Sequence record: OQ992561.1
Length of the DNA stretch: 64,000 nt
Direction: 5' to 3' (one strand)
Shown: in pieces, positions 225 through 39,349 of the stretch
Layout of the letters: every line of letters starts with the position of its first letter
How positions within the stretch are numbered: position 1 is the first letter of the stretch
Made by a program: the position numbers and the translations under genes
The notes under the pieces: model-generated
What the model saw: the letters and a program-made list of their open reading frames with translations, nothing else
Database searches by the model: none
Told to the model about the DNA's origin: nothing

Positions 225-1042
225 TGGATCCACGGCATCCAGTTAGCGACGAAATGCGCGCAATCATCGATACTGAACTTAATCGCATCGAGAAGAAGTA
301 TGGTGTAAAAGTCATCTATGCCTGTGAATCAGGTAGTCGTGGGTGGGGCTTTGCTTCAACCAATAGTGACTATGACGTTCGTTTCATTTACGTTAACCAT
401 CCGAGTCATTATGTTCGTGTGGATAATGAAGCACGTGATACTATTGAAGAGATGGTGTCTAAAGAACTAGACCTAGCTGGTTGGAGTATCACTAAGACTC
501 TTCAGCTTGCTTACAAGTCTAACCCCACTCTCTTGGAATGGCTAAACTCCCCAATCGTTTACCGTAAGGTTGATCGGGACTACAAGTTAATCCGTGATGC
601 TGCGCTAAAGCACTTCATCCCTGAATCGAGTTACATGCACTATATCTCGATGGCCAAACAAACCAAAATGCGTTGGTTGTCAGATGAGAAGATCCGGATG
701 AAGAAATACTTCTACTCTCTTCGTCCTCTGTTGGCTGCAATGTGGGTCCGTGAAAGTCTGGAACATCCGCCGATGGTATTCCATGACCTACTGCCTCTTC
801 TGTCAGATCCTATCCTTTATAAACGTATCCAAGAACTGGTTAATGATAAGGTTGGGTCTATTGAACAGGATCTGATAGATCGTTGCCCTATATTAGATCA
901 GTTCATCGATTTTCAATTGAGTCGTGAGAAACCAGACTTCGGTAAATATGAACGTCCGGACATCTATGCACTTACCGATCTAGCCTGGCATTTTGTTGAC
1001 AAGTACAAGCTCGACACATTCTCGAAACTACAGTGTATATAA
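224..1042 (+). CDS. RlaP/YcgL-family nucleotidyltransferase (Pol-beta superfamily)
   Basis: ESGSRGWGFASTNSDYDVRF motif (GS..DxD), later ELDLAGW, NPTLLEWL, KKYFYSLRPLLA. Confidence 0.85.
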   Translation: MDPRHPVSDEMRAIIDTELNRIEKKYGVKVIYACESGSRGWGFASTNSDYDVRFIYVNHPSHYVRVDNEARDTIEEMVSKELDLAGWSITKTLQLAYKSNPTLLEWLNSPIVYRKVDRDYKLIRDAALKHFIPESSYMHYISMAKQTKMRWLSDEKIRMKKYFYSLRPLLAAMWVRESLEHPPMVFHDLLPLLSDPILYKRIQELVNDKVGSIEQDLIDRCPILDQFIDFQLSREKPDFGKYERPDIYALTDLAWHFVDKYKLDTFSKLQCI

Positions 1043-1106
1043 CAAAGAAAATATTAGTAAATAAAGAAAAAAGTTTAATACTATCTTATTAAAAGGAAAA
1101 TATTTT

Positions 1107-1607
1107 ATGCTATTTAAAGATGAACTATGTATCGAAAATATCTTAGTAAAAGAAAAACTATACCTAGTTAGAAATATTGGTAGGAATCGTGAGGTATATC
1201 CTAATCCAAAAGTAACATATAAAGATATTAAGGAATTCGCTAAAATGTATGGTGTGATTCCAATGCAATTCTTAGGGCCGCTACTTCATGAAATCGTTGA
1301 ACGAGAAGATTTCGCCTTAAAAGGAAAAGAAGCACAGAAATTCATTGATGATAATCCTTATACTTTAATTGAATATGGTAGCAGTTTTCATATTTACTAC
1401 ATTATTCGTAATTATATTATCCCAACTACTACTGATCCAGATTGTAATAAATTCACTATTAATCTTTATAAGTATAAAGAATTTCTAGAAGAGGTTACTA
1501 ATAGGTTAAACATGCCACCTTTTTTGGACACCAGTGAACCTTATCGTAATTTCTTACTGACAATGCAAGAAAGTCTACGTACCATCCAGGATATTGTGGA
1601 AAATTAA
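1107..1607 (+). CDS. hypothetical protein
   Basis: 166-aa ORF, AAGGA RBS. Confidence 0.75.
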   Translation: MLFKDELCIENILVKEKLYLVRNIGRNREVYPNPKVTYKDIKEFAKMYGVIPMQFLGPLLHEIVEREDFALKGKEAQKFIDDNPYTLIEYGSSFHIYYIIRNYIIPTTTDPDCNKFTINLYKYKEFLEEVTNRLNMPPFLDTSEPYRNFLLTMQESLRTIQDIVEN

Positions 1608-1706
1608 TGAAGTTTAGAATGTTAAAAGTTAATGTATTAAATTTACTCTACTACATACTTTACCCTACTCCATATTGGGGTAGGGGTATTAAGGTGGAGT
1701 ATAAAT

Positions 1707-2000
1707 ATGTCAAGCAACAAACTATCTGCACAACTTAATCGTCATCACAATACTCGTATAGTTAATTATTATGTTTCACTAGCCGAGAGTCGTTATAATG
1801 ACACTAATCCTTCAGCAAAGGCTAAAGGTAAATGGCGTAAACATAATCCGTTTAACTGCGGTAGGTCTCGTTGTATGCTATGTGGTAATCCGCGTAAACA
1901 TTGGAATAGGATTACTCTTAATGAATTAAAAATAAATATTTCATTAAAAGAGCAACTCAATGATCTTTATGTAGATTATACTACGCTGACTGAGGATTAA
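1707..2000 (+). CDS. small basic Cys-motif phage protein
   Basis: CGRSRCMLCGNPRK motif; GGAG RBS. Confidence 0.7.
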   Translation: MSSNKLSAQLNRHHNTRIVNYYVSLAESRYNDTNPSAKAKGKWRKHNPFNCGRSRCMLCGNPRKHWNRITLNELKINISLKEQLNDLYVDYTTLTED

Positions 2001-2071
2001 ATTATGCATGAAGAATATGAAGCAATTTAATAGTTTAGATTAACCATTCGAAATAAATTTGGAATTAGCAA

Positions 2072-2194
2072 ATGAAAGTTAAAAATAAGCAACAGCCTAA
2101 GTTTGTCAATCTAGCTACTATGCAAGCTGCTTGGCGGCTTAATAACGCAGAACTCAAAGCTAAACGTGAAGCTAAAGAGAAACAAAAAGAGTAA
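2072..2194 (+). CDS. small basic protein (40 aa), not in ORF track
   Basis: MKVKNKQQPKF...KEKQKE*, followed by hairpin terminator. Confidence 0.5.
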   Translation: MKVKNKQQPKFVNLATMQAAWRLNNAELKAKREAKEKQKE

Positions 2195-2210
2195 AACTAT
2201 TTAGTTGCAT

Positions 2211-2239
2211 AAAGAGAGAGGAATTTATCCTCTCTCTTT
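2211..2239 (+). terminator. intrinsic terminator hairpin
   Basis: AAAGAGAGAGGA-ATTTA-TCCTCTCTCTTT. Confidence 0.75.
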
Positions 2240-2380
2240 TTATGCTGTTTTATAATTTGTAGACTACAGGTATATTTCAATATGGAATCTTATTTACACG
2301 TACCATTCTAGATAGAAATATCCTAACTGATATGTTTGTTCTTTATTCTCGGATCACTGAACCTAAAGAGGATTTTTAAG

Positions 2381-2863
2381 ATGGTTGAGCATTTAAATAA
2401 AGATAACTTCTTTTCATGGGGTGCTGTAGTAGGTGGTGCGCTATTACAGTATTTTGAAAATGGTAAACTTGAAGGTGGGTATGATATATTTAAATTCAGT
2501 GATGACGCCAACGGCCTAGTTATTACAGGTGGTATAACGCATCGAAAAAATATCGGGATCCTGAGTGGTCAAGGCGATGATGAAGATCTATTTTTAGTAT
2601 TTGTCATAAGTAATACCAATAGTCCATATGTCGTATGGTATTATGATATTTATAAAGATAATGAAGGTATTTGTTTTACAAATGCTTCACCTATCAGTGG
2701 TCGTATTTTTAAATCAGATACTGATGAAAATAATGACCTGTCGATAAGTCAATTACTTAAAGTAGTTAAATACTTAGTAGATGAACGAGTTCGTTTAAAT
2801 AAAAATATAGTTAATTCACCAGGTCATGAAATCATTGAAGAAGATAAAGACTTTCAACTATAA
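2381..2863 (+). CDS. hypothetical protein
   Basis: ATG at 2381 with GAGGA RBS preferred over the ORF-track start at 2336. Confidence 0.7.
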   Translation: MVEHLNKDNFFSWGAVVGGALLQYFENGKLEGGYDIFKFSDDANGLVITGGITHRKNIGILSGQGDDEDLFLVFVISNTNSPYVVWYYDIYKDNEGICFTNASPISGRIFKSDTDENNDLSISQLLKVVKYLVDERVRLNKNIVNSPGHEIIEEDKDFQL

Positions 2864-2891
2864 TAAGTCTTTTACAAAGTCACCATAAAGT

Positions 2892-2907
2892 CCTCCCTTC
2901 GGGGAGG
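2892..2907 (+). terminator. UUCG hairpin terminator (repeat family)
   Basis: CCTCCC-TTCG-GGGAGG then T-rich tract. Confidence 0.8.
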
Positions 2908-2927
2908 CTTTATATTTTATTTTTTTG

Positions 2928-2966
2928 TATTCAAACATATTTAAACAGTATATTACTAATGTGAAT
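2928..2966 (+). promoter_or_regulatory. phiKZ-type early promoter
   Basis: TATTCAAACATATTTAAACAG-TATATTAC-TAATGTGAAT; core at 2949-2956. Confidence 0.8.
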
Positions 2967-2992
2967 TCAATCTTGAAAAAAGGAGATATGTC

Positions 2993-3322
2993 ATGAATAT
3001 GTCAACTATTTCCACTGGTGTTCTGGTGCTTGGTGGTATTGCATTTGGTTACCATCTCTTTGATGGGGCACGTTCCATTTATAAAGAATGGTCGATGGAA
3101 TACATTTACAAAAAGCAAATGGCTAAGGTAAAGGAGCAGCTTACCGAATATGAAAACAAGTATGTTGAGATTCCATCAATAGCTGAAATAAATATCTATA
3201 TCGAACCAGTTCTAACTGAAGCTTTAAATAAACTTGATCGGTATAGTTACAACTGCTTCTTACATGATGTCGAACAGTACATCGAGTTTATTATTGATAA
3301 TTATCGTGTAGTTAATCGATAA
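2993..3322 (+). CDS. early membrane-anchored protein (gp241-like by position)
   Basis: N-terminal hydrophobic segment, AAGGAG RBS, own promoter and terminator. Confidence 0.75.
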   Translation: MNMSTISTGVLVLGGIAFGYHLFDGARSIYKEWSMEYIYKKQMAKVKEQLTEYENKYVEIPSIAEINIYIEPVLTEALNKLDRYSYNCFLHDVEQYIEFIIDNYRVVNR

Positions 3323-4848: not shown

Positions 4849-5205
4849 ATGCCAACTTATATTGAATTAATCAATATTGTCAATGACGATACTCCTGAAG
4901 ATGATGCAGTTATTAGTGATCTGATGAGCCAAATGAATGATAAACAAACTGTTCTTGACAGTTGTCGTATCAATCATAAAGGATATGCTTATTTCAAGTT
5001 CCATGTTAAGGGATCAATTAGTAAGGATAAACTTAAGGCTCTAAATGAAACTTTAAAAGATTCTAATCTTGTTGTGACTGATGCTAGTGCACAACGTGGC
5101 TTCATGCCACCTAATAAGTTTGATGATATCACTTATACTGAAGAGAGTGTTGGTTATAGGGCAATGGTCTGGACAAGCTTCACTATTGAAAAGCTACTTG
5201 TATAA
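4849..5205 (+). CDS. probable small virion protein (gp244-like by position)
   Basis: TATGTAG late-type motif at 4816 upstream and own terminator; identity inferred from gene order only. Confidence 0.45.
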   Translation: MPTYIELINIVNDDTPEDDAVISDLMSQMNDKQTVLDSCRINHKGYAYFKFHVKGSISKDKLKALNETLKDSNLVVTDASAQRGFMPPNKFDDITYTEESVGYRAMVWTSFTIEKLLV

Positions 5206-5207
5206 TA

Positions 5208-5225
5208 AGAGCCCTTCGGGGCTCT
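5208..5225 (+). terminator. UUCG hairpin terminator
   Basis: AGAGCCC-TTCG-GGGCTCT-TTCT. Confidence 0.75.
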
Positions 5226-5255
5226 TTCTATTTCGTAATTAGGTATCTGTATTAA

Positions 5256-5690
5256 ATGGATAAGTATCCTATTCTACACGCCATGTCTAAAGAAGAGGCA
5301 TTTAGACTTTTAGACATACAAGGTGAGTTTAGAAAAACTCAAATGAAGGAAAGGTATTGGAATGAGGAAACTGGTCTATGGTGGTGGGAACAACATCCCG
5401 ATGTGAAATTAAGGATAGTTGCTGCATGTAATAGATGGAAGGATGTTTATTTTATTGCGGCGAGACATTCATCAATCCTAATGACACAACAGCAGCTAAT
5501 GTATGGTGGTCTTAAGGTATTGCATGAATATGCAGGTGATGATCATGAACAAGGTTTCATTGATCAATATGAGAATTTCTACACTAGAGAAGAGGCAGCA
5601 GTTGTTGCAAAGAATAATAATCAGTTATATCGAGCTGAATTAGAAAATAGGTTAGTAACTAAATATTTATTTAGTGAAGACCTATATTAG
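5256..5690 (+). CDS. conserved phage protein (QGF...FYTREEA...LFSEDLY family)
   Basis: IVAAC..ARH..QGFIDQY..FYTREEA..LFSEDLY pattern common in phages. Confidence 0.75.
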   Translation: MDKYPILHAMSKEEAFRLLDIQGEFRKTQMKERYWNEETGLWWWEQHPDVKLRIVAACNRWKDVYFIAARHSSILMTQQQLMYGGLKVLHEYAGDDHEQGFIDQYENFYTREEAAVVAKNNNQLYRAELENRLVTKYLFSEDLY

Positions 5691-5720
5691 GTTTCCAATA
5701 ATTTAAATAGGAATATAGCT

Positions 5721-6377
5721 ATGCTAATGAATGAAATTATCGATATTCTAGAAGGAGGGAAAGAGAATATTCTCTTAACTAACCATCTAGGTAATGGCAA
5801 ATATTCCAATGCGGGTAATGCAATGGCTGCATCATATGCCATTGCGGCACATACTGCTGTTGGTCAATTGCGAGATGGTTCAGGAAAACCTTACTGGCAT
5901 CATTTATTACAAGTAGCTGAGATGGCGCAATTATTCGACCTATCTCACGCTGCTTATAAAGCAGCATGGTTACATGATGTAATTGAGGATACTGCTGTAA
6001 CTGCTTCTGATCTAACTAAACTATTCTCAATCCCTGTTGTTAATTTAGTAACTGAACTAACAAATGTAACTTACGAAGGTAATCGTAAAACTAGGATTAG
6101 TTTACAACATGAAAGACTTTCTCGCATTTCATGGAGTGGTCAATCTCTTAAGTTACTAGATTCCATTTCAAACATGTGGTCGATTGTTAATGATAAGCCT
6201 GATTTTGCTGAACTGTATCTGACTGAGAAAGCTCAACTAATCAGTAAGTTAAATAATTGTCACCCCGCTATTAAAGATCTGGCTATATCTGTTCTCTATG
6301 GCAGGTGTACTATGGTTGGTGGGGATGCACTAAAAGAATATAATAAACTATTTTCTGATAATGAAATTGTATGTTAA
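5721..6377 (+). CDS. HD-domain (p)ppGpp hydrolase-like protein (SpoT/Mesh1-type small alarmone hydrolase)
   Basis: AH..Q.R.GSGKPY..HL..V, AAWLHDVIEDT, KLLDSISN. Confidence 0.8.
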   Translation: MLMNEIIDILEGGKENILLTNHLGNGKYSNAGNAMAASYAIAAHTAVGQLRDGSGKPYWHHLLQVAEMAQLFDLSHAAYKAAWLHDVIEDTAVTASDLTKLFSIPVVNLVTELTNVTYEGNRKTRISLQHERLSRISWSGQSLKLLDSISNMWSIVNDKPDFAELYLTEKAQLISKLNNCHPAIKDLAISVLYGRCTMVGGDALKEYNKLFSDNEIVC

Positions 6378-6395
6378 AATAATTACTTAATATAC

Positions 6396-6415
6396 ACCCT
6401 CCCTTCGGGGAGGGT
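6396..6415 (+). terminator. UUCG hairpin terminator (repeat family)
   Basis: ACCCTCCC-TTCG-GGGAGGGT-TTTAT. Confidence 0.8.
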
Positions 6416-6433
6416 TTTATTTATCTTTTTTTG

Positions 6434-6474
6434 TATTTAAACTATTTAAAAAGCTATATTACAAATATGAATTT
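6434..6474 (+). promoter_or_regulatory. early promoter
   Basis: TATTTAAACTATTTAAAAAGC-TATATTAC-AAATATGAAT; core at 6455-6462. Confidence 0.8.
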
Positions 6475-6495
6475 AATAACCAAGAGGGCAATACA

Positions 6496-6759
6496 ATGAC
6501 TGAACGTTTGAAATCCGTATGGTGCGCTTGCAGCTTACTGCGTGAACGCTGGAGACACATCCAAGACATTGCTGTCGGGGATGAACATCATGTCATAGTA
6601 AAAAACGATATGCTGATGGTGTTTCGTGGTCAAGTACCGGTAGGTAGCATGTACCGGGGTGACAGTGACCCACTCATCTACGAGGGTGGTGCACTGGAAG
6701 AATTTACTAAAGTTGTATTGGATTTAGAATTCAATACTCGTGGTGAAACCAATAGTTAA
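6496..6759 (+). CDS. hypothetical early protein
   Basis: 87-aa ORF, GAGGG RBS. Confidence 0.7.
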   Translation: MTERLKSVWCACSLLRERWRHIQDIAVGDEHHVIVKNDMLMVFRGQVPVGSMYRGDSDPLIYEGGALEEFTKVVLDLEFNTRGETNS

Positions 6760-6785
6760 TAAAATTAATTTTGAGGTAATTCATT

Positions 6786-7193
6786 ATGAAATATGTAATT
6801 GCATTTATGTTGTCTATTGTAACTATCACTGCTAACTCGGCTGTCATGTACACTAATCGTGATTCATGCATCGAGTTTGTAAAACAGGCAGATGAATTGT
6901 TTGTAAAAGGTGCATCTGTAACTGAAGTGCAAATGAAGACTTATGAAAGGATTCATTATATCCTTAATAACACTAAAGATCTAAAGACCAACCAGTCTAA
7001 AGTTGAAGAACTCACTGGTCTATTTTACCTATGGTCTAAGGTAGATAAAATGGCAATTGAGGCAAGTTTGCCACGTGCAACAAATGCTGCTAAAGTCTAT
7101 AAGACCACTCCTGAGAAATTCATCATTGATGGTTATTTCCAGCGTTGTGTAGCGGCAGGTGCGTTTGAAGCAAAACCACTTACTCTAAAATAA
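6786..7193 (+). CDS. secreted Cys-pair paralog A
   Basis: Signal peptide ending ANSA; only two Cys (DSCIE, QRCVA). Confidence 0.75.
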   Translation: MKYVIAFMLSIVTITANSAVMYTNRDSCIEFVKQADELFVKGASVTEVQMKTYERIHYILNNTKDLKTNQSKVEELTGLFYLWSKVDKMAIEASLPRATNAAKVYKTTPEKFIIDGYFQRCVAAGAFEAKPLTLK

Positions 7194-7205
7194 TGGAGGT
7201 ACAAC

Positions 7206-7565
7206 ATGCTTAAGAATTGGCTATTATTCCTTTTCCTGCCAATCCTGTCCATTGCATGTCAGCCTGCCCACGCTGTAGAAGTGGGTATTACTAAGAAATC
7301 ATGTAATGTGGCAGTAAATCTTTCACAAAAAGCAACTGAGCTTTATGATAAGAACCTATCCCAATTTGAGATAATGATGCAGTTAGACATGATCTCTCGT
7401 AAGGATATGGATGACTTGGAGTTCTATGCAGGTGCGGTATATGCCAAGTTAAACTTAGTTGATATTCGAGTAAATAAACGAAAAGGATTTACCAATGGAG
7501 CTATCCTAGATAGGTTAGCTGAAAATTGTGTTGAAGCAATTGGTACTAAATTTAACTTGGAGTAG
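7206..7565 (+). CDS. secreted Cys-pair paralog B
   Basis: Signal peptide ending AHA; KSCNV...ENCVEAIGTKF. Confidence 0.75.
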   Translation: MLKNWLLFLFLPILSIACQPAHAVEVGITKKSCNVAVNLSQKATELYDKNLSQFEIMMQLDMISRKDMDDLEFYAGAVYAKLNLVDIRVNKRKGFTNGAILDRLAENCVEAIGTKFNLE

Positions 7566-7568
7566 ACT

Positions 7569-8363
7569 ATGATTAGTATCTATATTGTCATTATGCTCAT
7601 GGCTATGCTAGCTGCATTGACATGTGGTAATTTGGTAGATAGTTGGGTAAGGCCAGCTATTCTAAAATGGTTGAATGATGATGTTGCTATTCATTTCACC
7701 AAGGCCACCTGGATGGTTGGGGGAATCCCTAATGATGTTCCAGTGCAACTAGGTAAAGCTGTTTGGTTACCCAAATACGTGGGTGATGGAATACGTCTTT
7801 ACATTACGGCTGATGAAATAAAATTTGGATGGAATGGTAAAGAAAAAGATGCTTTAGCACGAGCCATTGTTGAAGTTATCTTTATCGGTAAGAATCCAAA
7901 TAGTAAACTTCTTGAAGTAAGTATTAAACCTATTTGGTTACACCCTTCTATCCAAAAAGAAAGTTTCTATTTAATGTTTGATTGGGAAAAGCTTTATACA
8001 AAAAATGAAGAGATGCGTATTTGTTGGAAGACAATACGTCACACTTTTTTCTATGGATTCCTAGGTTTGCTATTTGGCGGTAGTGCCAATGCAGATAACC
8101 TTGTATTAACTGAACGTGGATGTGATCAATATGAAGCAATGGTGAGAACTATTGCATCTAAAGCTTATATTGGATTAGATCCAGTTATGGGTAGGGAATT
8201 CATTATTAATGATCCTGATATGTTAAATGCCCGTGAGAAAGCACAACGTAATACCCGTATCATTATCGATATGGTGGAAACTGGACAAGAACCCAAAGAC
8301 ATTGCATTATGGATGAATACTCAATGTAAACAAGAAGCAGTGTCAAATTTAATAAAACAGTAA
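7569..8363 (+). CDS. membrane protein fused to secreted Cys-pair paralog C
   Basis: N-terminal TM; internal signal-like FFYGFLGLLFGGSANA followed by RGCDQ...TQCKQ. Confidence 0.65.
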   Translation: MISIYIVIMLMAMLAALTCGNLVDSWVRPAILKWLNDDVAIHFTKATWMVGGIPNDVPVQLGKAVWLPKYVGDGIRLYITADEIKFGWNGKEKDALARAIVEVIFIGKNPNSKLLEVSIKPIWLHPSIQKESFYLMFDWEKLYTKNEEMRICWKTIRHTFFYGFLGLLFGGSANADNLVLTERGCDQYEAMVRTIASKAYIGLDPVMGREFIINDPDMLNAREKAQRNTRIIIDMVETGQEPKDIALWMNTQCKQEAVSNLIKQ

Positions 8364-8376
8364 AAAAGGCATAGAT

Positions 8377-8760
8377 ATGAAAAGAAATTTTGAAGATGAT
8401 CACGTGGTAATGGCAGTGGAAGTATATGAGAAACTGAAAGAAGCTGCTGCTTATTCATTACACTCTTCTGAAATTAGTAAGATCGAACGACATATGCGTA
8501 AGTTTAATCGTGTTCAACGCGATAAACATATTGAAAATATGCATATGGAAATGCTTGAGAAACGCGAGGCTATTAGAAAAGCAAAATCTTTCTTTTCTCA
8601 AAATGCCGGTAAAATTGGTTGCGTAGTAGATAGGCTTGTCAAAGTATGTGAAGTGTATAAAATGGATAAGTCTATGGTGGTTGTTGAGTTTCTCCAACAT
8701 AAATCTAAAATTAAAGTTCCAGTAAATCCTGAAAAAATTACTATTCTTACCATTAAATAA
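8377..8760 (+). CDS. hypothetical protein
   Basis: 127-aa ORF, AAGG RBS. Confidence 0.7.
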   Translation: MKRNFEDDHVVMAVEVYEKLKEAAAYSLHSSEISKIERHMRKFNRVQRDKHIENMHMEMLEKREAIRKAKSFFSQNAGKIGCVVDRLVKVCEVYKMDKSMVVVEFLQHKSKIKVPVNPEKITILTIK

Positions 8761-8777
8761 ATGAAGAAGGATTTAAA

Positions 8778-9233
8778 ATGAAAAATGTAATTGCAGCAGC
8801 TTTCGCTGGTCTCATTGCCATTACCGGTATCATGTTCAATACCGCAATGGCTGAAATCAAGATTGGTAAAAAAGATGCTCAACTCACTGTGCAGTCGTGT
8901 GCAATGGTTGAAACCATTACTAAACAAGCTGTATTTCGAATGAGTGAAGGTCATAGCGCAGATGAAGTTGGTGTGCTTATGCTCAACAACTCTGCTAAAC
9001 TCAAAGATGAGTTGGATACCAATAATTGGATTGCGTTAACATTCGTATTCAATAGTCTTAATAAAATCAATAATGACCTTAACAGTAAAGAGATCCATGA
9101 TTATATCCGTAGTCAAGGTTACAATGTGACTACTCCTAATCTGGCAGCTTTTATCAGCGGGTATTATGGCAATTACTGCATGAAGCATATTGGTGAGAAA
9201 TTCACTCACATGGTAATTGTTGAACTTATTTAA
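8778..9233 (+). CDS. secreted Cys-pair paralog D
   Basis: Signal peptide ending AMA; QSCAM...NYCMKHIGEKF. Confidence 0.75.
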   Translation: MKNVIAAAFAGLIAITGIMFNTAMAEIKIGKKDAQLTVQSCAMVETITKQAVFRMSEGHSADEVGVLMLNNSAKLKDELDTNNWIALTFVFNSLNKINNDLNSKEIHDYIRSQGYNVTTPNLAAFISGYYGNYCMKHIGEKFTHMVIVELI

Positions 9234-9265
9234 TTCATATCGAATACTTTCAAAAGGAAAATAGG

Positions 9266-9643
9266 ATGAAATACGTCTTCTCGCTCATTATCACTATGGT
9301 AGCAATGTCGGTTAATGCACAACCCGTAACCGTGTCATCTTGCTACGTGCTGCACAGCTTGGCAAAGAATATGGTTCAATTCTACACTAATGGCGGTGAG
9401 CCATTGGAGATGTATGCAATACTGCAAGATGAACTATCCATTGCCATAGATAAAAACCAGAGTGATAAGGCACTCGCTATTAATATCGCATTGGATAATG
9501 TCGATGTAATATACCAAAATCTCACTGATCCCGCACTTAAGCTTTTGGCAAAGAGCGAGGGAAGTGATCTTGGTGAGATGCTGACTGAAAAACTCAGTAA
9601 TGGGTGTTTCAATATAGTCGGCGAGGAGTTGTATGATAACTAG
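9266..9643 (+). CDS. secreted Cys-pair paralog E
   Basis: Signal peptide ending VNA; SSCYV...NGCFNIVGEEL. Confidence 0.75.
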   Translation: MKYVFSLIITMVAMSVNAQPVTVSSCYVLHSLAKNMVQFYTNGGEPLEMYAILQDELSIAIDKNQSDKALAINIALDNVDVIYQNLTDPALKLLAKSEGSDLGEMLTEKLSNGCFNIVGEELYDN

Positions 9644-9872
9644 AATCATCCTAATTGTTGCATGGGTATGGGTAATCTCTCTTATGGGAATGATTACGTA
9701 TGTTCTTTATGATACGTATCAATTTCGTAAGAAATTAGAAATGCCTGTTGTAGAATGGGAAGATAAGGCGAAGGACACTCCTGTTAAGAAGTGTCCAGAT
9801 GAAGTATTATTCGCTGAAGACCCAAAGGATGGCAAACTCAAAATGGGATGCCCTGAGAGTTATAAGAAATAA
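9633..9872 (+). CDS. small single-TM protein with Cys pair
   Basis: N-terminal TM; KKCP...GCP. Confidence 0.7.
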   Translation: MITRIILIVAWVWVISLMGMITYVLYDTYQFRKKLEMPVVEWEDKAKDTPVKKCPDEVLFAEDPKDGKLKMGCPESYKK

Positions 9873-9874
9873 TT

Positions 9875-9894
9875 AGAGGACCTTCGGGTCCTCT
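9875..9894 (+). terminator. UUCG hairpin terminator
   Basis: AGAGGACC-TTCG-GGTCCTCT-TTTT. Confidence 0.8.
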
Positions 9895-9954
9895 TTTTAA
9901 CCGACTGGACGGTTAAAACTAGGTGGGATAAATTAAACTATTTGAGGAAATCTA

Positions 9955-10062
9955 ATGCAACTTAGTAATGAACTTTTCTATGTGGGTATGGTAGCTGTAT
10001 CAATGTCAATCGGTATGCTATTTAGCTATATTTATCACACTCATAAGAAAAAATATAAATAA
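9955..10062 (+). CDS. 35-aa membrane peptide, not in ORF track
   Basis: GAGGA RBS; [35 protein letters not shown]. Confidence 0.6.
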
Positions 10063-10071
10063 AGTCATAAA

Positions 10072-10091
10072 CCCTCTCCCAAAGGAGAGGG
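10072..10091 (+). terminator. hairpin terminator
   Basis: CCCTCTCC-CAAA-GGAGAGGG-CTTTT. Confidence 0.75.
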
Positions 10092-10107
10092 CTTTTACAT
10101 TAAATTT

Positions 10108-10136
10108 TTTTTGAAATCTATATTACACTAATACAA
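10108..10136 (+). promoter_or_regulatory. early promoter
   Basis: TATATTAC at 10119-10126 after terminator. Confidence 0.7.
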
Positions 10137-10165
10137 CATTAAACTATTAAATAGGTAATTAAAAA

Positions 10166-10540
10166 ATGAATGAAAATATTAAACGCTCATTTATTGGTAT
10201 GCCACTGTCTATCAATATTGGTAAAGATATTGATTTATCAATGTATGAACGAATTGTATTTGTATCACAAGTAGATAAAAATGATATAAAATACTTTGTT
10301 TATAAATTAAATAAATCCAAATTTAAACATGAACCAAATGTAGTTAATTACGCCGAAACAGATAAGGATATTATTATTTATCCCCCGCTTGATTTCATTC
10401 AGACAATTAATGAATATTATCGAGTATCATTGGAAAATGAATTTATGTGTCATCCTGTTATTCTAAAAGCAGATGATAGTAATAATCAAGAAGTATTTTT
10501 GAAAACTATTAAAATGGTACATGAGTATGTCGATGAATAA
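10166..10540 (+). CDS. hypothetical protein
   Basis: 124-aa ORF. Confidence 0.7.
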   Translation: MNENIKRSFIGMPLSINIGKDIDLSMYERIVFVSQVDKNDIKYFVYKLNKSKFKHEPNVVNYAETDKDIIIYPPLDFIQTINEYYRVSLENEFMCHPVILKADDSNNQEVFLKTIKMVHEYVDE

Positions 10541-10988
10541 CTGCGCATTTATTAATTTAAGGCAACGTTTAGTTAATGATAAACTAACCTATGTGATTCA
10601 TCCCATAGTGAAGGTTTATGATTTCACTAGAAAGGCTATTAGACAATTAACTGATTTTGCTATTTTAGATAGTTATAACTTCCCAGAGGAAACTTCCAAT
10701 ATTAGTGTTCAGCCAACTATCACAGATGATACTAATAATAGAAATTCTTTGATACATCTTGGGGTTATAGAAGAGCCTGATTTTGGACCAACTAGATTAT
10801 ACGCCATCTTAGATAGAGAAATCAAAGATGATTCTAATCTAATTGAAACAACTGATGATGGCTGGTATACATTGGATGAGTTAATTCTAGTTGAAGACGA
10901 TATGGATGAATTCGCGCGACTTATTGTTCAGTACTTGCGAACTATTCCGAGGAAGCCACAATGGTTAACTTCGACAAAAGATGTTTAG
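10521..10988 (+). CDS. hypothetical protein, possibly degenerate Nudix-fold
   Basis: IHLGV and GWYTLDEL..DEFARLI resemble COG4112-type Nudix proteins; Nudix box not intact. Confidence 0.45.
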   Translation: MSMSMNNCAFINLRQRLVNDKLTYVIHPIVKVYDFTRKAIRQLTDFAILDSYNFPEETSNISVQPTITDDTNNRNSLIHLGVIEEPDFGPTRLYAILDREIKDDSNLIETTDDGWYTLDELILVEDDMDEFARLIVQYLRTIPRKPQWLTSTKDV

Positions 10989-11191
10989 AAATAGAGCCTA
11001 ATCAGTTAGGTTATGTATTTACAAAGATCGGTTGGGAAATATGTGTTACTATTGGCATACGACATATATGTGCTAAAACCTATTATACAGTGTATTCACT
11101 TAATGATAAATGCATTTATTACATTGAGCATTCAGCGCAATTTACTAAACGCATAAAACCAAACTATATACAAAGGTTTCATGTTCTATGA
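10961..11191 (+). CDS. hypothetical protein (start uncertain)
   Basis: Fills gap and overlaps both neighbours. Confidence 0.45.
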   Translation: MVNFDKRCLEIEPNQLGYVFTKIGWEICVTIGIRHICAKTYYTVYSLNDKCIYYIEHSAQFTKRIKPNYIQRFHVL

Positions 11192-12295: not shown

Positions 12296-12730
12296 ATGGC
12301 TGATATAGTAATTGCACTAATCCTGTCAGCAATTATTGTTTATCTAATTAATATTTTTAAACACCCAAAAATAATTTATGCCAATAGTGTAAATGATAAT
12401 GTCTTCATTGTTACTGGTTGCTCTTATATATCTGAAAATAATGAAGATGGTACATTAACAACTTTTTCACCTAAATTAAATAATAGGTTAATAATTGATT
12501 TAACTAAAGGTCAACCCAATAAAGACTTTTATATTTCAGTATTAGATAACACACTTAAATTCCATCACACTGTTGATGAAATCATCACAGCTAATAAATG
12601 GGAAGCTTTATTTAAAATTAGCATAACCAAAGAGGATGTGTGTATCTCAGGAATGTCTCTTAAAAATAAACACATTAAATGTAATTTACACTGGGTTATA
12701 GTACCAGGTAAAATGGCGAATAAATTGTAA
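12296..12730 (+). CDS. membrane-anchored hypothetical protein
   Basis: N-terminal TM segment. Confidence 0.7.
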   Translation: MADIVIALILSAIIVYLINIFKHPKIIYANSVNDNVFIVTGCSYISENNEDGTLTTFSPKLNNRLIIDLTKGQPNKDFYISVLDNTLKFHHTVDEIITANKWEALFKISITKEDVCISGMSLKNKHIKCNLHWVIVPGKMANKL

Positions 12731-15147: not shown

Positions 15148-15444
15148 ATGAATAAATATTACCATTTGAAGAAGCAGAAGGATGCTACATGGACAATTGA
15201 ATTTTTAGGAAAGATGCGTAATTTTAAATTCAACCATGTAACTAAACATAATAATAGTTGGATTAGCATGGGTATTGAAGGTTATCCAGCACTTAAATTT
15301 AACTGTGATGGATTTGGTAGATTAGAAAGTATTCAACCTATTGATGATGATTTAACCATCGATGAGATATTTATTCCATGTAAGCATTCTGTTTCGCAGT
15401 GTATCGATATAACAACACTTTATATGGGTGGTCAATGTGACTGA
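15148..15444 (+). CDS. hypothetical protein
   Basis: 98-aa ORF. Confidence 0.65.
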   Translation: MNKYYHLKKQKDATWTIEFLGKMRNFKFNHVTKHNNSWISMGIEGYPALKFNCDGFGRLESIQPIDDDLTIDEIFIPCKHSVSQCIDITTLYMGGQCD

Positions 15445-15874
15445 GATAATATTAGTTATTTTATCATTGTTTGTTCTTTCAGTCATAACCGGCTATTGTA
15501 TAACCCGGTTAGAGAAAACCGAGGATATAACTTACTATGTTAAATCAATTACGTATTACTTAGGTAAACATGATACTACGGTTTTCGATAGTGACCCTAA
15601 GGTAGTTCAGTTAGATAATCCAATAAAGTTAATCTTCACAAATGAACCAGTTCAAATAAAAACTCTTTTCTTTGATCTAGATAAAGAAGAACTGTATCTT
15701 GATCATCCTGGGTATGCATGTATTGTAATGCGTGTTATTTTCTTTTTAAATTATCACAATCAACAAAAACTTATTGGCTATTCAGATGAGTATTACCATG
15801 ATAATGAATATGTTGATAGTGAGTCTGATATGGTTATAAAAAAGATTGGTGTGGAATGCTATATGGGTCTATAG
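15428..15874 (+). CDS. membrane-anchored hypothetical protein
   Basis: N-terminal TM segment. Confidence 0.65.
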   Translation: MVNVTEIILVILSLFVLSVITGYCITRLEKTEDITYYVKSITYYLGKHDTTVFDSDPKVVQLDNPIKLIFTNEPVQIKTLFFDLDKEELYLDHPGYACIVMRVIFFLNYHNQQKLIGYSDEYYHDNEYVDSESDMVIKKIGVECYMGL

Positions 15875-33059: not shown

Positions 33060-33136
33060 TGGTGCCGCCACTCCGAATCGAACGGAGGACCTACGCATTA
33101 CAAGTGCGTTGCTCTACCTAGCTGAGCTATAGCGGC
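33060..33136 (-). tRNA. trnT: tRNA-Thr(TGT)
   Basis: Cloverleaf GCCGCTA..., anticodon loop CTTGTAA, TTCGA T-loop, encoded CCA. Confidence 0.95.
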
Positions 33137-33145
33137 GAAATCTTC

Positions 33146-33175
33146 TACATATAGTGTATATGGAAGTATTATTTT
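33146..33175 (-). promoter_or_regulatory. TAC-N14-TATGTA promoter for tRNA-Thr
   Basis: Minus strand AATAATAC-14 nt-TATGTAG. Confidence 0.6.
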
Positions 33176-33187
33176 ATTTATTTAATA

Positions 33188-33730
33188 TTAAATAAATAAC
33201 CAACGCTTATCATATTCAACTAAGTCATTGAATTCAATTTTCTCGAATCGCCATGACTGAACAGTAGTTCTGATTAGATTACCTGACTTATTAACAATAT
33301 AACCTTGCATAGTATCAAATAACTTGTCCGATTCACCGAGAATAAATATTAGATACACATCATCTGTATTTTTGGTATGCATTGATTTTAATTTATAAAT
33401 ACATGGCCTAAAGGAATCGTAATTTTTATAATATTCTTTGATTTCTAGAGCAGCATCAATCATCATCTTGGCGCTATTCTGAATGCCATTATTAAGTAGA
33501 TAATTATTAAGCTCTTTTAATGAATCATCTGTCAGTGATGCTTCGATATGTTCTTCACTTATAGGGTCGCTATAAACTAGTTTATTAATAGCTGAATTAA
33601 CAATATTTAGTTTATCAACATCATAAGCTACTAATGTTTGCTTGCCAACATTTATTTTTAATACTTTATTTGAATTATTAATAAAGTCGTCTAGATCTAG
33701 TGTATTAAAATGAAAAGCCATTTGAGTCAC
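33188..33730 (-). CDS. hypothetical protein
   Basis: 180-aa ORF. Confidence 0.7.
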   Translation of the reverse strand: MTQMAFHFNTLDLDDFINNSNKVLKINVGKQTLVAYDVDKLNIVNSAINKLVYSDPISEEHIEASLTDDSLKELNNYLLNNGIQNSAKMMIDAALEIKEYYKNYDSFRPCIYKLKSMHTKNTDDVYLIFILGESDKLFDTMQGYIVNKSGNLIRTTVQSWRFEKIEFNDLVEYDKRWLFI

Positions 33731-33841
33731 CTTTATGTTTTCCGTAGTGTTAAATTTTATTAACGCCCGGTTTCTAGTTGAGTTATATGTAGGGTTAACC
33801 TACAAATAATAATGACTTTATGTATATTTTTACTTATAAAT

Positions 33842-33865
33842 AGACCCCTCTATATAGAGGGGTCT
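33842..33865 (-). terminator. terminator of FN3/virion cassette
   Basis: AGACCCCTCTA-TA-TAGAGGGGTCT. Confidence 0.7.
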
Positions 33866-33879
33866 TATGCCGTATAAAG

Positions 33880-34740
33880 TTATTTTAGTATAGGTCTAAA
33901 TACAAAAATCACATCAACTTCATTAGCTATGTCAACATCATATTCAATACCATCGTTATCGATAGCAACTAACATGGTATTATTTCTTGGAGATGGTGTT
34001 GATGTGAGGAACTTTACATTATCTGGCAGTGATAAATTAGTTACCGGGGACTGGTCTGTTTGGATGCCTGTCTGAAAAGCTGTACCCATATAACGCTTGA
34101 ATTCGTTTAATGTTGGAACATATACCTCCCACTTAACGTCCTGCATATCTATTATACGTCCTTGTTGAGTTGGACCACCTATATGTTCTATCAATTCACT
34201 CGGCCATACATCGGACATATCTCCAGACCGTCCCATGTACCCCGCATGGTAAACAGCCACAGCGACAGCTTTCTCAATACTAGATGTATCATGAAAAGCT
34301 ACATACTCATTATCAATAAAATAAGGGGTTGGAGCCTCATCAAGATTCATTCCTGGGATGCTATATGGCGAAGAACCAATTGGTCTAAGGGTTGGTCTAT
34401 TTTCACCTTTGTATGACTTTGTCAACCTGGCATATTGTCCATCACCGGCTTCAAGCTTTGTATATCCCAATACACTTTGCCATTTACTACTTACACTAAG
34501 AGTACGCATTGGTCCTGTATAAGCTAATTGACCAAATATATCCTTATATTTTAAGTTCAACCAAACGCATGTATCTTCAGGGTATCTGGATGGCCAGAAT
34601 CCTGCTATTAAATCCCAATCATAGTAATAGTGGGGTGGTAGGTTATTGTAATCCCAAGGTATCGCATTGGTATACGACCAAAATGTAACGATCGGTGTAG
34701 AACCAGGCCAACCTCTAACATTTTTAAGAGTGATGTACAT
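33880..34740 (-). CDS. putative virion structural protein (paralog family)
   Basis: TAATG coupling gives start MYITLK; shares C-terminal F/WRPIL and GPG-type motifs with neighbours. Confidence 0.7.
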   Translation of the reverse strand: MYITLKNVRGWPGSTPIVTFWSYTNAIPWDYNNLPPHYYYDWDLIAGFWPSRYPEDTCVWLNLKYKDIFGQLAYTGPMRTLSVSSKWQSVLGYTKLEAGDGQYARLTKSYKGENRPTLRPIGSSPYSIPGMNLDEAPTPYFIDNEYVAFHDTSSIEKAVAVAVYHAGYMGRSGDMSDVWPSELIEHIGGPTQQGRIIDMQDVKWEVYVPTLNEFKRYMGTAFQTGIQTDQSPVTNLSLPDNVKFLTSTPSPRNNTMLVAIDNDGIEYDVDIANEVDVIFVFRPILK

Positions 34741-35594
34741 TAATTTACTCCTGATTCTTGGATAAAATTTAATATGGGTTTCCAATACCAACTAACATTA
34801 GCATCAATAGTTGGGTTAAAAGTGGTAATGGTTGATGACCCATACTTACTCAGATCCTTAAATGCTCTAGTTGAATTCGCACCTACTACAGTCATAATTA
34901 CCCTGACATCATCTGCATTTTTATTAACCTGATCACTAATTGACCGGATCATTGATTTTCTAGGGTAATCAGCTGGTAGTGTATATGGTCCAACAAACCG
35001 ACCATCCATAACTTGCATATAGAACGAAGTTGGCAATGATGGGACATAAAAAGAATATTTACAATTACCTTTAACTATAGTTCTATTATTATCTACATTA
35101 TTAATTAGCTCAGATAATTTGTCTATCGGTATCTCGATATAACCCATATATGGGAGAAAGTAAATATCTGATTTATGTTTAATTTTTGTCCATTGATCAG
35201 TCCAATTTATGGCATTTTCCGATTGCCCATTAAACATCATTAATAGATCTTGAAGACTAGGAAGCTCCGGACTAGTTACCCTATCTAACAATGCAGCTCC
35301 ATCTGCTTGCATCATAGGTTCTAAGAAACCACCTGGTCCATATTGCGAAACAGCTTTAAATGTAAATACTGGACTAATGGCTGTGTCGCCGCCTTCTCTT
35401 ACAGTCCTAATGCGATAATCGTAAACATTACCAATTACCACATCACGATCAATAATAGCTGTCGTGAATCCGTCTAGTTTCTGGATTGGTTGGTTTATAG
35501 GAGTATCCGGAATAGGTGTACCTGATAACTCGCGGTATACTTCAATACTTGTAATTGATCTAGAATTAGGATTCCTAATTTTAAAGGTAATCAT
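34740..35594 (-). CDS. virion protein with N-terminal FN3/Ig-like domain
   Basis: IEVYR...IIDRDV..G..YDYRIR...GPG. Confidence 0.7.
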   Translation of the reverse strand: MITFKIRNPNSRSITSIEVYRELSGTPIPDTPINQPIQKLDGFTTAIIDRDVVIGNVYDYRIRTVREGGDTAISPVFTFKAVSQYGPGGFLEPMMQADGAALLDRVTSPELPSLQDLLMMFNGQSENAINWTDQWTKIKHKSDIYFLPYMGYIEIPIDKLSELINNVDNNRTIVKGNCKYSFYVPSLPTSFYMQVMDGRFVGPYTLPADYPRKSMIRSISDQVNKNADDVRVIMTVVGANSTRAFKDLSKYGSSTITTFNPTIDANVSWYWKPILNFIQESGVN

Positions 35595-37537: not shown

Positions 37538-37539
37538 GG

Positions 37540-38508
37540 CTACACCTCCTTCGGTTTAGTTAGACCTGTATAAACTAGAATTGGCCAAATAAGCATTTTA
37601 TTCCATACGTCATCTGTGGCTACATTAACTACTTCGGTATGTAGTTCTTTTGCTCTTAATGGATATACTGCATCTCTACTTGTCCAATTAATAGCTGTAC
37701 ATTCATTATCAGTCCAATCTGAACTAATTATATATTTTATTTCGGTATCTGGAAATCTGGCACTCAATGGGTCATAGAACATATTTAAACCACTGTTTAA
37801 TGTAAGTCTACCACCTGTTTTGTTACCTGTCTCAGCATCTTCAACACGAGCATACATCTCTGTAATAACTGCCATCATTGACCGCAGTTCACCTGGGAAA
37901 TGCCGCACATTATGGTTTGGATTATTATGATGTTCGGCTGAGGGTATTATTATTTTCCAATCATGTAAACCTATTGTTAATGGAATTGCACCACCATTAA
38001 TTAATGTTTGCATGATTTCACTATCTCTTGGTAGTTCCGACCCAATTGCCAATGGATATGGGAAGGTACCTCTAACAGTACCACCTATTGCGAATTTATG
38101 AAGTTCTGCTACTTCTAGATAGTTACCTGTAATTGGCCCTAAACTAAATGCTTCACGAACCATATTAAACGATGGTAATGACGGTAAGTCCATTGGGAAC
38201 TTTCCAAAATAACCAAAACGTTCATCTCCAAATTGGAAAATAGCTGGACCAGGTCCAGTGTATGGGATAGCTGTAAATGTGAACATATCCGATGCTTCAA
38301 ATTTTTGTGATCCATAGATCAATCTAAAGCGATAATAATATGTTTTTTTATGTTCCACGGTTGTATCTTGATAAGATGTTATCCCTGGTCCAACTGTAGC
38401 AATTAATTCAGCATCTTTAATATTATCGAATTCGTAATCGGCTCGATAAATTTCAGTGGAGTGATATTTTGTTTTATTAGGATCAAGCCATTTAAGTTCA
38501 ATTATCAT
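37540..38508 (-). CDS. virion protein with N-terminal FN3/Ig-like domain
   Basis: TEIYR..SYQD..YYYRF..GPGP..GDE..GYFG. Confidence 0.75.
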   Translation of the reverse strand: MIIELKWLDPNKTKYHSTEIYRADYEFDNIKDAELIATVGPGITSYQDTTVEHKKTYYYRFRLIYGSQKFEASDMFTFTAIPYTGPGPAIFQFGDERFGYFGKFPMDLPSLPSFNMVREAFSLGPITGNYLEVAELHKFAIGGTVRGTFPYPLAIGSELPRDSEIMQTLINGGAIPLTIGLHDWKIIIPSAEHHNNPNHNVRHFPGELRSMMAVITEMYARVEDAETGNKTGGRLTLNSGLNMFYDPLSARFPDTEIKYIISSDWTDNECTAINWTSRDAVYPLRAKELHTEVVNVATDDVWNKMLIWPILVYTGLTKPKEV

Positions 38509-38656
38509 CCGGTATAACCTCTGGTTCAGTCACGGTATTATCTAAATCGATAACCTGGAAACTTGCTGAAGGTGGTAAACTACCTTCGTATATGTCTATA
38601 GCATCCACAACAGGTTTTAAATTAACAAGTGGTGTAAATAATAACGCCTCAAACAT
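38498..38656 (-). CDS. 52-aa peptide MFEALLFTP..., not in ORF track
   Basis: GAGGT RBS; N-terminus resembles MFELLLSP of the 39639-40646 Kelch protein. Confidence 0.6.
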   Translation of the reverse strand: MFEALLFTPLVNLKPVVDAIDIYEGSLPPSASFQVIDLDNTVTEPEVIPDDN

Positions 38657-38780
38657 TTAAATACCTCTTCTAAAAATTACTATAATTTATAGTTAATGAC
38701 ATATGCAAAGCCATTAAAAATGACTTCGCATATGCGTACTATATTTTATTTAGACAACAATGTCATATCATAACAACATA

Positions 38781-38803: not shown

Positions 38804-38823
38804 TTATTTTACCTATTTATATT

Positions 38824-39348: not shown

Positions 39349-39349
39349 T

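Follow-up and report, generated by a model that had tools for sequence, protein, structure and literature searches.

Within a 64,000-nucleotide stretch of sequence record OQ992561.1, hereafter the window, the genes gp246.1 to gp253, probably together with gp253.1, form one early transcription unit, and this unit encodes a real and previously undescribed family of small, predicted exported proteins with two cysteines each. Five candidate copies lie on the plus strand: gp247 (6786-7193), gp248 (7206-7565), the C-terminal domain of gp249 (residues 176-264, 8094-8360), gp251 (8778-9233), and gp252 (9266-9643). We tentatively read these proteins as occupying the host envelope early in infection, where they would block components required by later-arriving phages, a reading to which we assign somewhat less than an even chance.

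By sequence, the window is that of a phiKZ-type Pseudomonas aeruginosa jumbo (nucleus-forming) phage. Over 6400-9900 it shares 100% identity with Pseudomonas phage ANB1 and 99.0% with phiKZ. This region is matched by 47 phage records, all P. aeruginosa Phikzvirus, each of which covers the whole region at an identity of at least 98.9%. The products of gp246.1 to gp253.1 are annotated as hypothetical throughout, and those of gp246.1 to gp253 are hypothetical in all 47 relatives. A sequence-only reading of the window had placed genes at 6786, 7206, 7569, 8778, 9266, and 9633; all six are present and correspond to gp247, gp248, gp249, gp251, gp252, and gp253.

Predicted export signals and cysteine layout

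Export was judged from sequence rules (charged residues, a hydrophobic segment, and a small-x-small site) together with the behavior of the cysteines. The N-termini of gp247, gp248, gp251, and gp252 each hold a short charged stretch, then a hydrophobic stretch, then a small-x-small site. In gp249 the same signal-like arrangement is internal, at approximately residues 149-175, and forms the second membrane segment of the protein. Past the signal-type site each of the five chains has exactly two cysteines, the first at mature position 10, 10, 10, 16, and 8 in gp247, gp248, gp249, gp251, and gp252, respectively, and the second 11-17 residues from the C-terminus. The 135-residue gp247 would comprise a signal peptide and a 117-residue mature chain with Cys10 and Cys103, the 151-residue gp251 a signal peptide and a 126-residue mature chain with Cys16 and Cys109, and the 125-residue gp252 a signal peptide and a 107-residue mature chain with Cys8 and Cys96. 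These three look like free periplasmic proteins. The 119-residue gp248 has a signal followed by a helical domain, with Cys33 and Cys108 in full-length numbering. Net charges of the mature copies are +3, -1, -3, -2, and -10, the last being that of gp252, and therefore different partners are suggested.

The signal of gp248 can be parsed in two ways, with a lipobox-like Cys18 or with cleavage after residue 23. Nine of 11 gp248 orthologues have the lipobox-like cysteine at the end of the hydrophobic segment, which is missing in P0014 and in the orthologue of contig L012, and all have a signal-peptidase-I-type site 5-6 residues past that position. If cut at the lipobox-like site, gp248 would be a 102-residue chain with Cys1, Cys16, and Cys91. 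The protein may thus be free or lipid-anchored in the periplasm, and on either reading it would lie outside the cytoplasm. We infer Sec export, signal cleavage, and a disulfide in the exported proteins from sequence rules and cysteine conservation. The sequence-only reading had claimed Sec-type signals on all five copies, exactly two cysteines in each mature part, and similar C-terminal endings in three of them; all of this was found, with the refinement that the gp249 "signal" is a membrane segment and that of gp248 is perhaps of lipoprotein type.

We considered an internal translation start at Met149 of gp249 and rejected it, as the codon is without a spaced ribosome-binding site and the L012 homologue is without a Met there.

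N-terminal hydrophobic segments were counted with a crude rule-based classifier, which missed gp248, so that this protein was entered by hand. Thirteen of the 89 annotated window genes encode such a segment, and six of the 13 fall in this eight-gene run, a clustering with P = 7e-5 (6e-3 after scan correction).

Sequence evidence for a family

A local database of 756 open reading frames (ORFs; 71,565 residues) was compiled from the window and seven related phage loci and searched with a profile made from the mature parts of eight gp248 orthologues. The first non-orthologous matches were gp251 (E = 2e-4), a 150-residue protein of phage Psa21 (E = 8e-4), and gp252 (E = 0.011), all aligning in register with the gp248 profile. 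Iteration brought in a D6 protein and the 151-residue proteins of PA1C and Temi, and at the third iteration gp247 scored E = 0.019 with the hidden Markov model (HMM), with an RVTF4 protein at E = 0.0045. The C-terminal part of gp249 never reached significance in this iterated search of the 756 ORFs; the best non-member matches of the family HMM among them were exactly the remaining candidates. When the copies were compared with hhalign, gp251 aligned with gp252 at a probability of 90% (E = 2e-6, 103 columns) and with the gp248 family over nearly its full length (E = 1.6e-4, 91 columns), and gp252 aligned with the gp248 family at E = 1.9e-3. The gp249 C-domain gave a colinear and suggestive alignment with the gp248 family (P = 0.008, 79 columns), and gp247 a non-significant one (P = 0.2). 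A search of PHROGs returned a weak match of gp251 to the PHROG of gp248. Pairwise identities among the copies are 15-25%.

When 22 sequences drawn from 10 phages or contigs were aligned, no column but those of the two cysteines was invariant (22/22); a Gly five residues past the second cysteine is found in 19, and every mature chain has exactly two cysteines. The motif [ILV]T..[SG]C has nine matches in the 71,565 residues, eight of them in candidate family members, and in gp249 it lies five residues past the signal-like site. We defined the family by a signal-type segment, a first cysteine of the [ILV]T..[SG]C type, a second cysteine 11-17 residues from the end with its Gly, a helical chain, and a position after the HD-hydrolase gene. 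All of these features, plus significant profile scores, are found in gp248, gp251, and gp252, whose homology is solid as judged by the profiles. The gp249 C-domain has the motif, the cysteine pair, and a structural match (see below), with non-significant sequence profiles. The cysteine pair, position, and signal are all present in gp247, the HMM value of E = 0.019 being its profile support, and its assignment to the family is weak. Of the five paralogs proposed from the sequence, three are thus carried by profiles, one by structure, and one weakly.

General libraries gave little beyond this. Pfam, NCBIfam, and PADLOC searches returned no family match for the operon proteins, and PHROGs returned only singleton entries of unknown function (one of its own for gp246.1, PHROG 22383 for gp249, and PHROG 26895 for gp253). 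Rfam returned nothing in 5000-11000. A four-paralogue profile, or gp251 alone, searched against all Protein Data Bank (PDB) chain sequences found no match to any solved structure. A 149-residue exported two-cysteine protein of PA1C and Temi (L006 4803-5252) was not tied to the family by sequence profile.

Structural models

AlphaFold2 models were prepared for mature gp248, using an alignment of the four paralogues, and for gp249. The gp248 model (predicted local distance difference test [pLDDT] 61, predicted template modeling score 0.53) has five helices, with Cys10 in the first and Cys85 in the last. The gp249 model (pLDDT 55 overall, 61-77 in the C-domain) runs from a membrane helix through a beta-rich domain and a second membrane helix to four helices, with Cys185 at the start of the first C-domain helix and Cys253 in the last. 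The cysteine pair would thus be placed to tie the first helix to the last.

The gp248 model was searched against BFVD, a database of predicted viral structures, and retrieved the orthologues of phiPA3, Psa21, and 201phi2-1 with query-normalized template modeling scores (TMq) of 0.64-0.73, as well as the 150-residue Psa21 member (TMq 0.63) and a 151-residue protein taken as a phiKZ-like gp251 (TMq 0.50). With the gp249 model as query, the gp248 orthologues of phiPA3, 201phi2-1, and Psa21 came up at ranks 2, 8, and 18, after gp249 itself, with probabilities of 0.99-1.00 and target-normalized scores (TMt) of 0.52-0.62. Because its model retrieves gp248 orthologues, membership of the gp249 C-terminal half in the family is supported by predicted structure, not by sequence. 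Of the five copies for which a shared fold was anticipated, the models cover gp248 and the gp249 C-domain. A Foldseek search of the PDB with the gp248 model (pLDDT 61) gave nothing significant among 25 matches with E <= 10.

The 264-residue gp249 (7569-8363) looks like a fusion of a membrane-anchored beta-rich protein with a signal-bearing family member. Its model also matches phiPA3 gp314 (144 residues, probability 0.99) and a 169-residue Phabio protein, and these matches probably come from the N-terminal half. A sequence comparison of that half with gp259 of the window found no link.

Transcription of the operon

The putative early promoter region (6429-6462, plus strand) consists of a T-rich stretch and TATATTAC at 6455-6462, where the sequence-only reading had placed an early promoter. 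The motif lies 41 nucleotides 5' of the first ATG and just 3' of a hairpin at 6396-6415 (plus strand), the terminator at which the upstream gp246 transcript would end (8-bp stem with six GC pairs, UUCG loop, T-run; -16.3 kcal/mol). It has been given as a phiKZ promoter motif (PMC7058600), and phiKZ early promoters have been described as an extended -10 with a T-rich element upstream (PMC8244752). We rejected TATATTAC as an enriched word: 13 copies were found against 7.4 expected in this AT-rich window, so that the count is uninformative, and the informative part is position relative to start codons. Eight of the 10 plus-strand copies lie 41-59 nucleotides upstream of annotated start codons. 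The 35 nucleotides ending in the motif here (6429-6463) share 74% identity with those at 10093-10127. The positioned plus-strand copies (2949, 3381, 6455, 10119, 12804, 23721, 51436, and 51940) mark a series of early units.

Published RNA-seq source data (PMC10914614) were examined, the columns being taken, after the main text, as 0, 2, 4, 6, 8, and 10 min in duplicate. Between the first post-infection point and the last, RNA rose from 207 to 763 for gp246.1, 418 to 1555 for gp247, 313 to 1100 for gp248, 486 to 1932 for gp249, 495 to 2017 for gp250, 223 to 1034 for gp251, 278 to 1236 for gp252, 214 to 899 for gp253, and 324 to 1387 for gp253.1. The upstream neighbor gp246 went from 35 to 215 and the downstream neighbor gp254 from 26 to 264. 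Among controls, the early genes gp014 and gp054 (nucleus shell) rose from 795 to 3234 and from 166 to 1830, and the late genes gp120 (major capsid) and gp144 (endolysin) went from 383 to 283 and from 48 to 30. Every gene of the unit is therefore on at 2 min, the outcome whose absence the sequence-only reading had named as refuting it, and at a level similar to that of the nucleus-shell gene. RNA steps up approximately 6- to 12-fold across the 6396-6415 hairpin, and the unit stands about 10-fold above both flanking genes. The genes thus constitute one early transcription unit, bounded on both sides by approximately tenfold RNA steps. It is well supported that the virion RNA polymerase reads the unit from a promoter of the TATATTAC type in the first two minutes after infection.

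The unit had been thought to end at 9875. A hairpin with five T residues is present there (9875-9894, plus strand; -15.8 kcal/mol), but it seems leaky, because the RNA of gp253.1 equals the operon level, and the transcript probably runs past it through gp253.1 to a further hairpin at 10072-10091 (plus strand; -15.4 kcal/mol), beyond which RNA is about 10-fold lower. The three terminators at 6396-6415, 9875-9894, and 10072-10091 are near-identical in design, with 8-bp GC-rich stems and four-base loops, UUCG in two of the three.

Four further genes, all on the plus strand, complete the unit. It opens with gp246.1 (6496-6759), which encodes an acidic 87-residue protein without a signal, and gp250 (8377-8760) encodes a basic 127-residue protein, also without a signal and outside the family; neither had been counted in the earlier outline of the operon. 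The start of gp253 (9633-9872) overlaps the end of gp252. Its 79-residue product has the N-terminal membrane anchor and further cysteine pair noted from the sequence (conserved Cys54 and Cys73 in the C-terminal part), but gp253 is probably not the last gene as had been supposed: gp253.1 (9955-10062), a 35-residue membrane peptide encoded between the two hairpins, likely closes the unit on the RNA evidence. Shine-Dalgarno-like sequences precede all genes of the unit. The upstream gp246 (5721-6377), which encodes an HD-domain, RelA/SpoT-like phosphohydrolase, is a separate and much more weakly transcribed unit.

Protein detection and dispensability

In gradient proteomics of infected cells, for which samples at 10, 20, and 30 min were pooled (PMC10914614), gp247, gp248, gp249, gp250, and gp251 were above the detection level and gp252 was far below it. 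Both gp247 and gp251 were in low-molecular-weight fractions, and approximately half of gp248 and most of gp250 were in the pellet. For Churi, a 99% identical phage whose gene numbers we mapped by gene order starting from the gp246 homologue, mass spectrometry at 15 min picked up the gp248 homologue in each of two experiments and the gp252 homologue in a single one. A growth-inhibition screen of 15 early proteins also included the Churi gp248 homologue; the sole inhibitor that it reported was a different protein. A transposon study recovered a viable insertion in orf252 and found orf184-304 to be a largely non-essential, host-interaction arm. That this is an accessory early operon is well supported. 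Our literature search found no function described for these genes, which appear in tables only, in agreement with what the sequence-only reading had stated.

Conservation and distribution

L010, a metagenomic relative and the closest divergent one, with 72-96% protein identity, has the same genes minus gp246.1. It keeps every cysteine of gp247, gp248, gp249, gp251, gp252, and gp253, and the cysteines of the cytoplasmic neighbors gp245, gp246, and gp250 differ. The ratio of nonsynonymous to synonymous substitution rates (dN/dS) against L010 is 0.08-0.23 for genes of the unit where measurable and 0.08-0.16 for the family copies; in gp248 and gp251 synonymous changes are saturated and dN is low. 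The fastest-evolving gene of the unit is gp250, at 60% identity to L010 and dN/dS of 0.23 with varied cysteines, and among relatives it was seen only in L010; gp253 is 96% identical there. By these measures the copies are old, under purifying selection, and nearly invariant in 47 isolates. The description of the operon as a diversified effector array was accordingly overstated, and a rapidly diversifying array is rejected on dN/dS.

The most widely conserved member is gp248, with orthologues in phiPA3, 201phi2-1, Phabio, Psa21, D6, RVTF4, and the PA1C group. One to five copies occur in synteny 3' of the HD-hydrolase gene in phiPA3, Phabio, Psa21, D6, RVTF4, PA1C, Temi, L010, and L012/L014: one in phiPA3 and Phabio, two in Psa21, D6, and RVTF4, and two in PA1C and Temi plus one further exported two-cysteine protein. 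The HD-domain phosphohydrolase gene is the left-hand landmark in most relatives (gp246 here; L003, L006, L009, L010, L012, and L014). L012/L014 represents a much more distant nucleus-forming phage, whose ligase is 48% identical to that of PA1C-type Pseudomonas phages. Past its HD-hydrolase and ligase genes are a gp248 orthologue whose signal peptide is plain, a 149-residue family member, a gp249 homologue at 31% identity with the C-terminal cysteine pair kept, and a gp253 homologue, also at 31% identity with its cysteine pair kept (E = 5e-16).

Of the related phages and contigs examined, all but Psa21, D6, and RVTF4 were seen to encode a small membrane protein with a cysteine pair near the module. 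Those past the module in phiPA3 (where it is unannotated), Phabio, PA1C, and Temi are unrelated to gp253 in sequence and carry C-x-[KR]-Y-P-L-x-C (L003 4505-4669, L004 4342-4506, L006 5348-5518, and L009 5362-5538); their layout is analogous to that of gp253.

Wider searches added little. When the four-paralogue profile was run with HMMER against 1.84 billion representative proteins, 10 matches came back. One of them, in a 5,522-residue protein, is probably spurious, and almost all the others were gp248 orthologues or the queries themselves, whole or in fragments; no cellular relative stood out. Scans of IMG/VR and JGI metagenomes turned up only PA7 and Phabio and nothing new, word-indexed protein searches with gp248 and gp249 found only near-identical proteins, and tblastn of gp251 and gp249 against 50,697 phage records found only phiKZ-species phages. 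As far as these searches reach, the family is confined to Pseudomonas-type nucleus-forming phages.

Possible function

The reading that we put forward was drawn after the table-only literature, the viable orf252 insertion, and the growth screen that named another protein. It holds that the small all-helical two-cysteine proteins would leave the cytoplasm by the Sec pathway and occupy the envelope early, where each copy would bind and block a different periplasmic or outer-membrane component needed by a later-arriving phage. Candidate targets are a cell-wall hydrolase carried on the tail or a receptor approached from its periplasmic side. T4 Spackle and T5 Llp, which the proteins resemble in architecture, act in this manner. 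In gp249, which would cross the membrane twice, the fifth copy would form the periplasmic end, gp253 (membrane-anchored, with its own cysteine pair) and gp253.1 would be made alongside the exported copies, and the differing surface charges (+3 to -10) would reflect different targets.

The examples offered by the sequence-only reading, namely superinfection exclusion, receptor masking, and inhibition of sensors, are conjectural. Several observations weigh against our proposal. No similarity to Spackle of phage T4 or Llp of phage T5 was found in PDB sequence or fold searches, and no Pfam, NCBIfam, or PADLOC family was found. Purifying selection together with near-invariance among isolates is unusual for an arms-race interface. 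Related nucleus-forming phages have been studied in co-infection (PMC12908238), and exclusion cannot be immediate or absolute because related phages co-infect. The operon is away from tail and receptor-binding genes, unlike the gene for Llp. Cleavage, lipidation, disulfide, and periplasmic location are predictions from sequence rules, and confidence in the two models is low to moderate (pLDDT 61 and 55).

The purifying selection would suit conserved host targets better than fast-evolving phage targets, and this favors an unlikely alternative in which the exported copies bind and silence periplasmic domains of host sensors or defense systems, with gp249 and gp253 as membrane-held versions and with, for example, envelope-stress sensor kinases or membrane-embedded anti-phage systems as targets. 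The transposon study tied orf184-304, the non-essential arm in which the operon is situated, to host interaction and defense, and Tad1 (gp184), the Juk activator gp241, and the inhibitor gp302 are encoded there too. Expression of the operon is immediate, and several differently charged copies would fit several host targets. Against these points, no similarity to a known anti-defense protein or PADLOC family was found, no periplasmic defense target is known for phiKZ, and over-expression of the Churi gp248 homologue in the 15-protein screen left another protein as the only one reported inhibitory.

A link by cysteines from the first helix to the last is a hallmark of the saposin fold. The copies could accordingly be disulfide-clamped helical bundles that bind phospholipid or lipopolysaccharide and remodel or stabilize the envelope of the infected cell, for instance during vesicle formation at entry or cell bulging. 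In geometry, the gp248 model comes closest in the PDB to saposin A (TMq 0.53, TMt 0.61, root mean square deviation 3.5, 76 columns) and saposin C, and half of gp248 is in the pellet fraction. These matches are non-significant (E 5.7-6.4, probability 0.12-0.21) and come from a low-confidence model, however, saposins have three disulfides to the one here, and gp247 and gp251 sediment like small soluble proteins, so that we regard lipid binding as quite improbable.

It is less probable still that the proteins make up one device and not five effectors, with gp249 as a trans-envelope link between a periplasmic family domain and a beta-rich domain in the cytoplasm, and with the free paralogues and gp253 as its exchangeable periplasmic partners. 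Such a device would signal to the cytoplasm of the infected cell that something has happened in the periplasm, for example that another phage has arrived or that the envelope is damaged.

T4 RI, the antiholin of lysis inhibition, is a small exported helical protein. Periplasmic proteins that sense outside conditions and modulate the holin in the same manner would be a further explanation, and a paper on phiKZ lysis sees parallels with T4 lysis inhibition and describes the receiver of the signal as unknown; gp249 is also modeled as spanning the membrane with domains on both sides. But the periplasmic domain of the phiKZ holin (gp142) is small and the holin regulator gp143 is cytoplasmic, the operon is approximately 95 kilobases from the lysis cassette, and it is on from 2 min, when the lysis genes gp143 and gp144 are flat; a role in lysis timing is thus very doubtful.

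That these are merely unrelated small secreted neighbors with two cysteines each by chance is scarcely credible and largely refuted for four of the five copies: the non-significant hhalign result of gp247, the non-significant sequence score of the gp249 C-domain, and identities of 15-25% speak for it, but the gp251 alignments (to gp252 at 90% probability and E = 2e-6, to the gp248 family at E = 1.6e-4), the remaining candidates as leading non-member HMM matches among the 756 ORFs, the structural tie of gp249 to gp248 orthologues, and the invariant cysteine pair, common motif, and clustering (P = 7e-5) speak against it.

Other features of the window

On the minus strand, 45132-45545 encodes a 137-residue protein with a cleavable-looking signal peptide, two cysteines, and a Gly/Ala-rich stretch, which adjoins the ribonucleotide reductase genes and is unrelated to the two-cysteine family by HMM. 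N-terminal membrane anchors are present in the products of 12296-12730 (gp259, 144 residues) and 15428-15874 (148 residues, GTG start). Six tRNA genes (Thr, Asn, Asp, Met, Pro, and Leu) are interspersed with small ORFs in 33060-42431 (minus strand), and the sign of the GC skew flips at approximately 31800, where the coding strand changes from plus to minus.

Significance

As a model nucleus-forming phage and a therapy candidate, phiKZ has been studied almost wholly with respect to the cytoplasm, that is, the vesicle, the nucleus, ribosome capture, and anti-defense. From minute two it also appears to send approximately five related proteins and membrane partners into the host envelope. If they serve exclusion or receptor masking, the operon would bear on phiKZ-type phages in mixed infections and in phage cocktails; if their targets are host envelope sensors or lipids, they would add a periplasmic chapter to jumbo-phage takeover. 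A trans-envelope device, were it real, would be a phage-encoded envelope sensor without described counterpart in nucleus-forming phages. The family is in any case a compact test case, with four or five copies of one small fold bearing very different surfaces, and because the copies are few and the fold small, structures and binding partners should be readily obtainable.

Comparison with known systems

By template modeling score, the PDB entries nearest to the gp248 model are saposins A and C (TMt 0.61 and 0.51). They are helical bundles of approximately 80 residues in which, as proposed here, the first and last helices are disulfide-linked. Unlike the phage family with its single cysteine pair, they have three disulfides and are eukaryotic lysosomal lipid-binding proteins; the fold match is non-significant, and no sequence similarity was found.

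T4 Imm, which works with Spackle in exclusion as its membrane partner, and the periplasmic antiholin RI of T4 are small membrane or periplasmic proteins through which a phage controls events at the envelope of the cell it has infected. Sizes and topologies differ from those of the phiKZ proteins, and neither Imm nor RI turned up in the general library and PDB searches, but the operon likewise mixes membrane proteins (gp249, gp253, and gp253.1) with exported ones.

Llp of phage T5, which stands with the Cor family among the superinfection-exclusion lipoproteins of the outer membrane, is made early and jams the receptor from the periplasmic side; its Cys1 is lipidated, and a Cys11-Cys58 disulfide joins both termini. 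Cys16 and Cys91 of the 102-residue gp248 chain are kept in all orthologues and would form a comparable bond. Llp has 61 residues and its gene adjoins that of the receptor-binding protein, whereas gp248 is longer and helical, has an HD hydrolase and small unknown genes as neighbors, and lacks the lipobox cysteine in two of 11 orthologues. No PDB sequence or fold match to the FhuA-Llp entry was found.

T4 Spackle (gp61.3) is an early periplasmic superinfection-exclusion protein that inhibits the tail lysozyme (gp5) of an incoming phage. After removal of a 22-residue signal, its 75-residue mature chain forms five helices with a Cys29-Cys81 disulfide. No match to it at E <= 10 was obtained when the four-paralogue profile and gp251 were searched against all PDB chains, Spackle included, the Pfam and PHROG searches gave no link, and no Spackle chain was among the 25 Foldseek PDB matches with E <= 10 of the gp248 model (pLDDT 61). 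The phiKZ family differs in its longer mature chains (89-126 residues against 75) and in having five copies against one, with one copy fused to a membrane protein. The likenesses are early expression, with transcripts of the phiKZ unit at 2 min, a signal-type segment, and a small helical chain. In Spackle a helix-1 cysteine, seven residues past the mature N-terminus, is bonded to one near the C-terminus; the phiKZ copies have their first cysteine at mature position 8-16, in helix 1 of the models, and their second in the last helix, 11-17 residues before the chain ends. On these comparisons the resemblance to Spackle and Llp is one of design, not of demonstrated descent.

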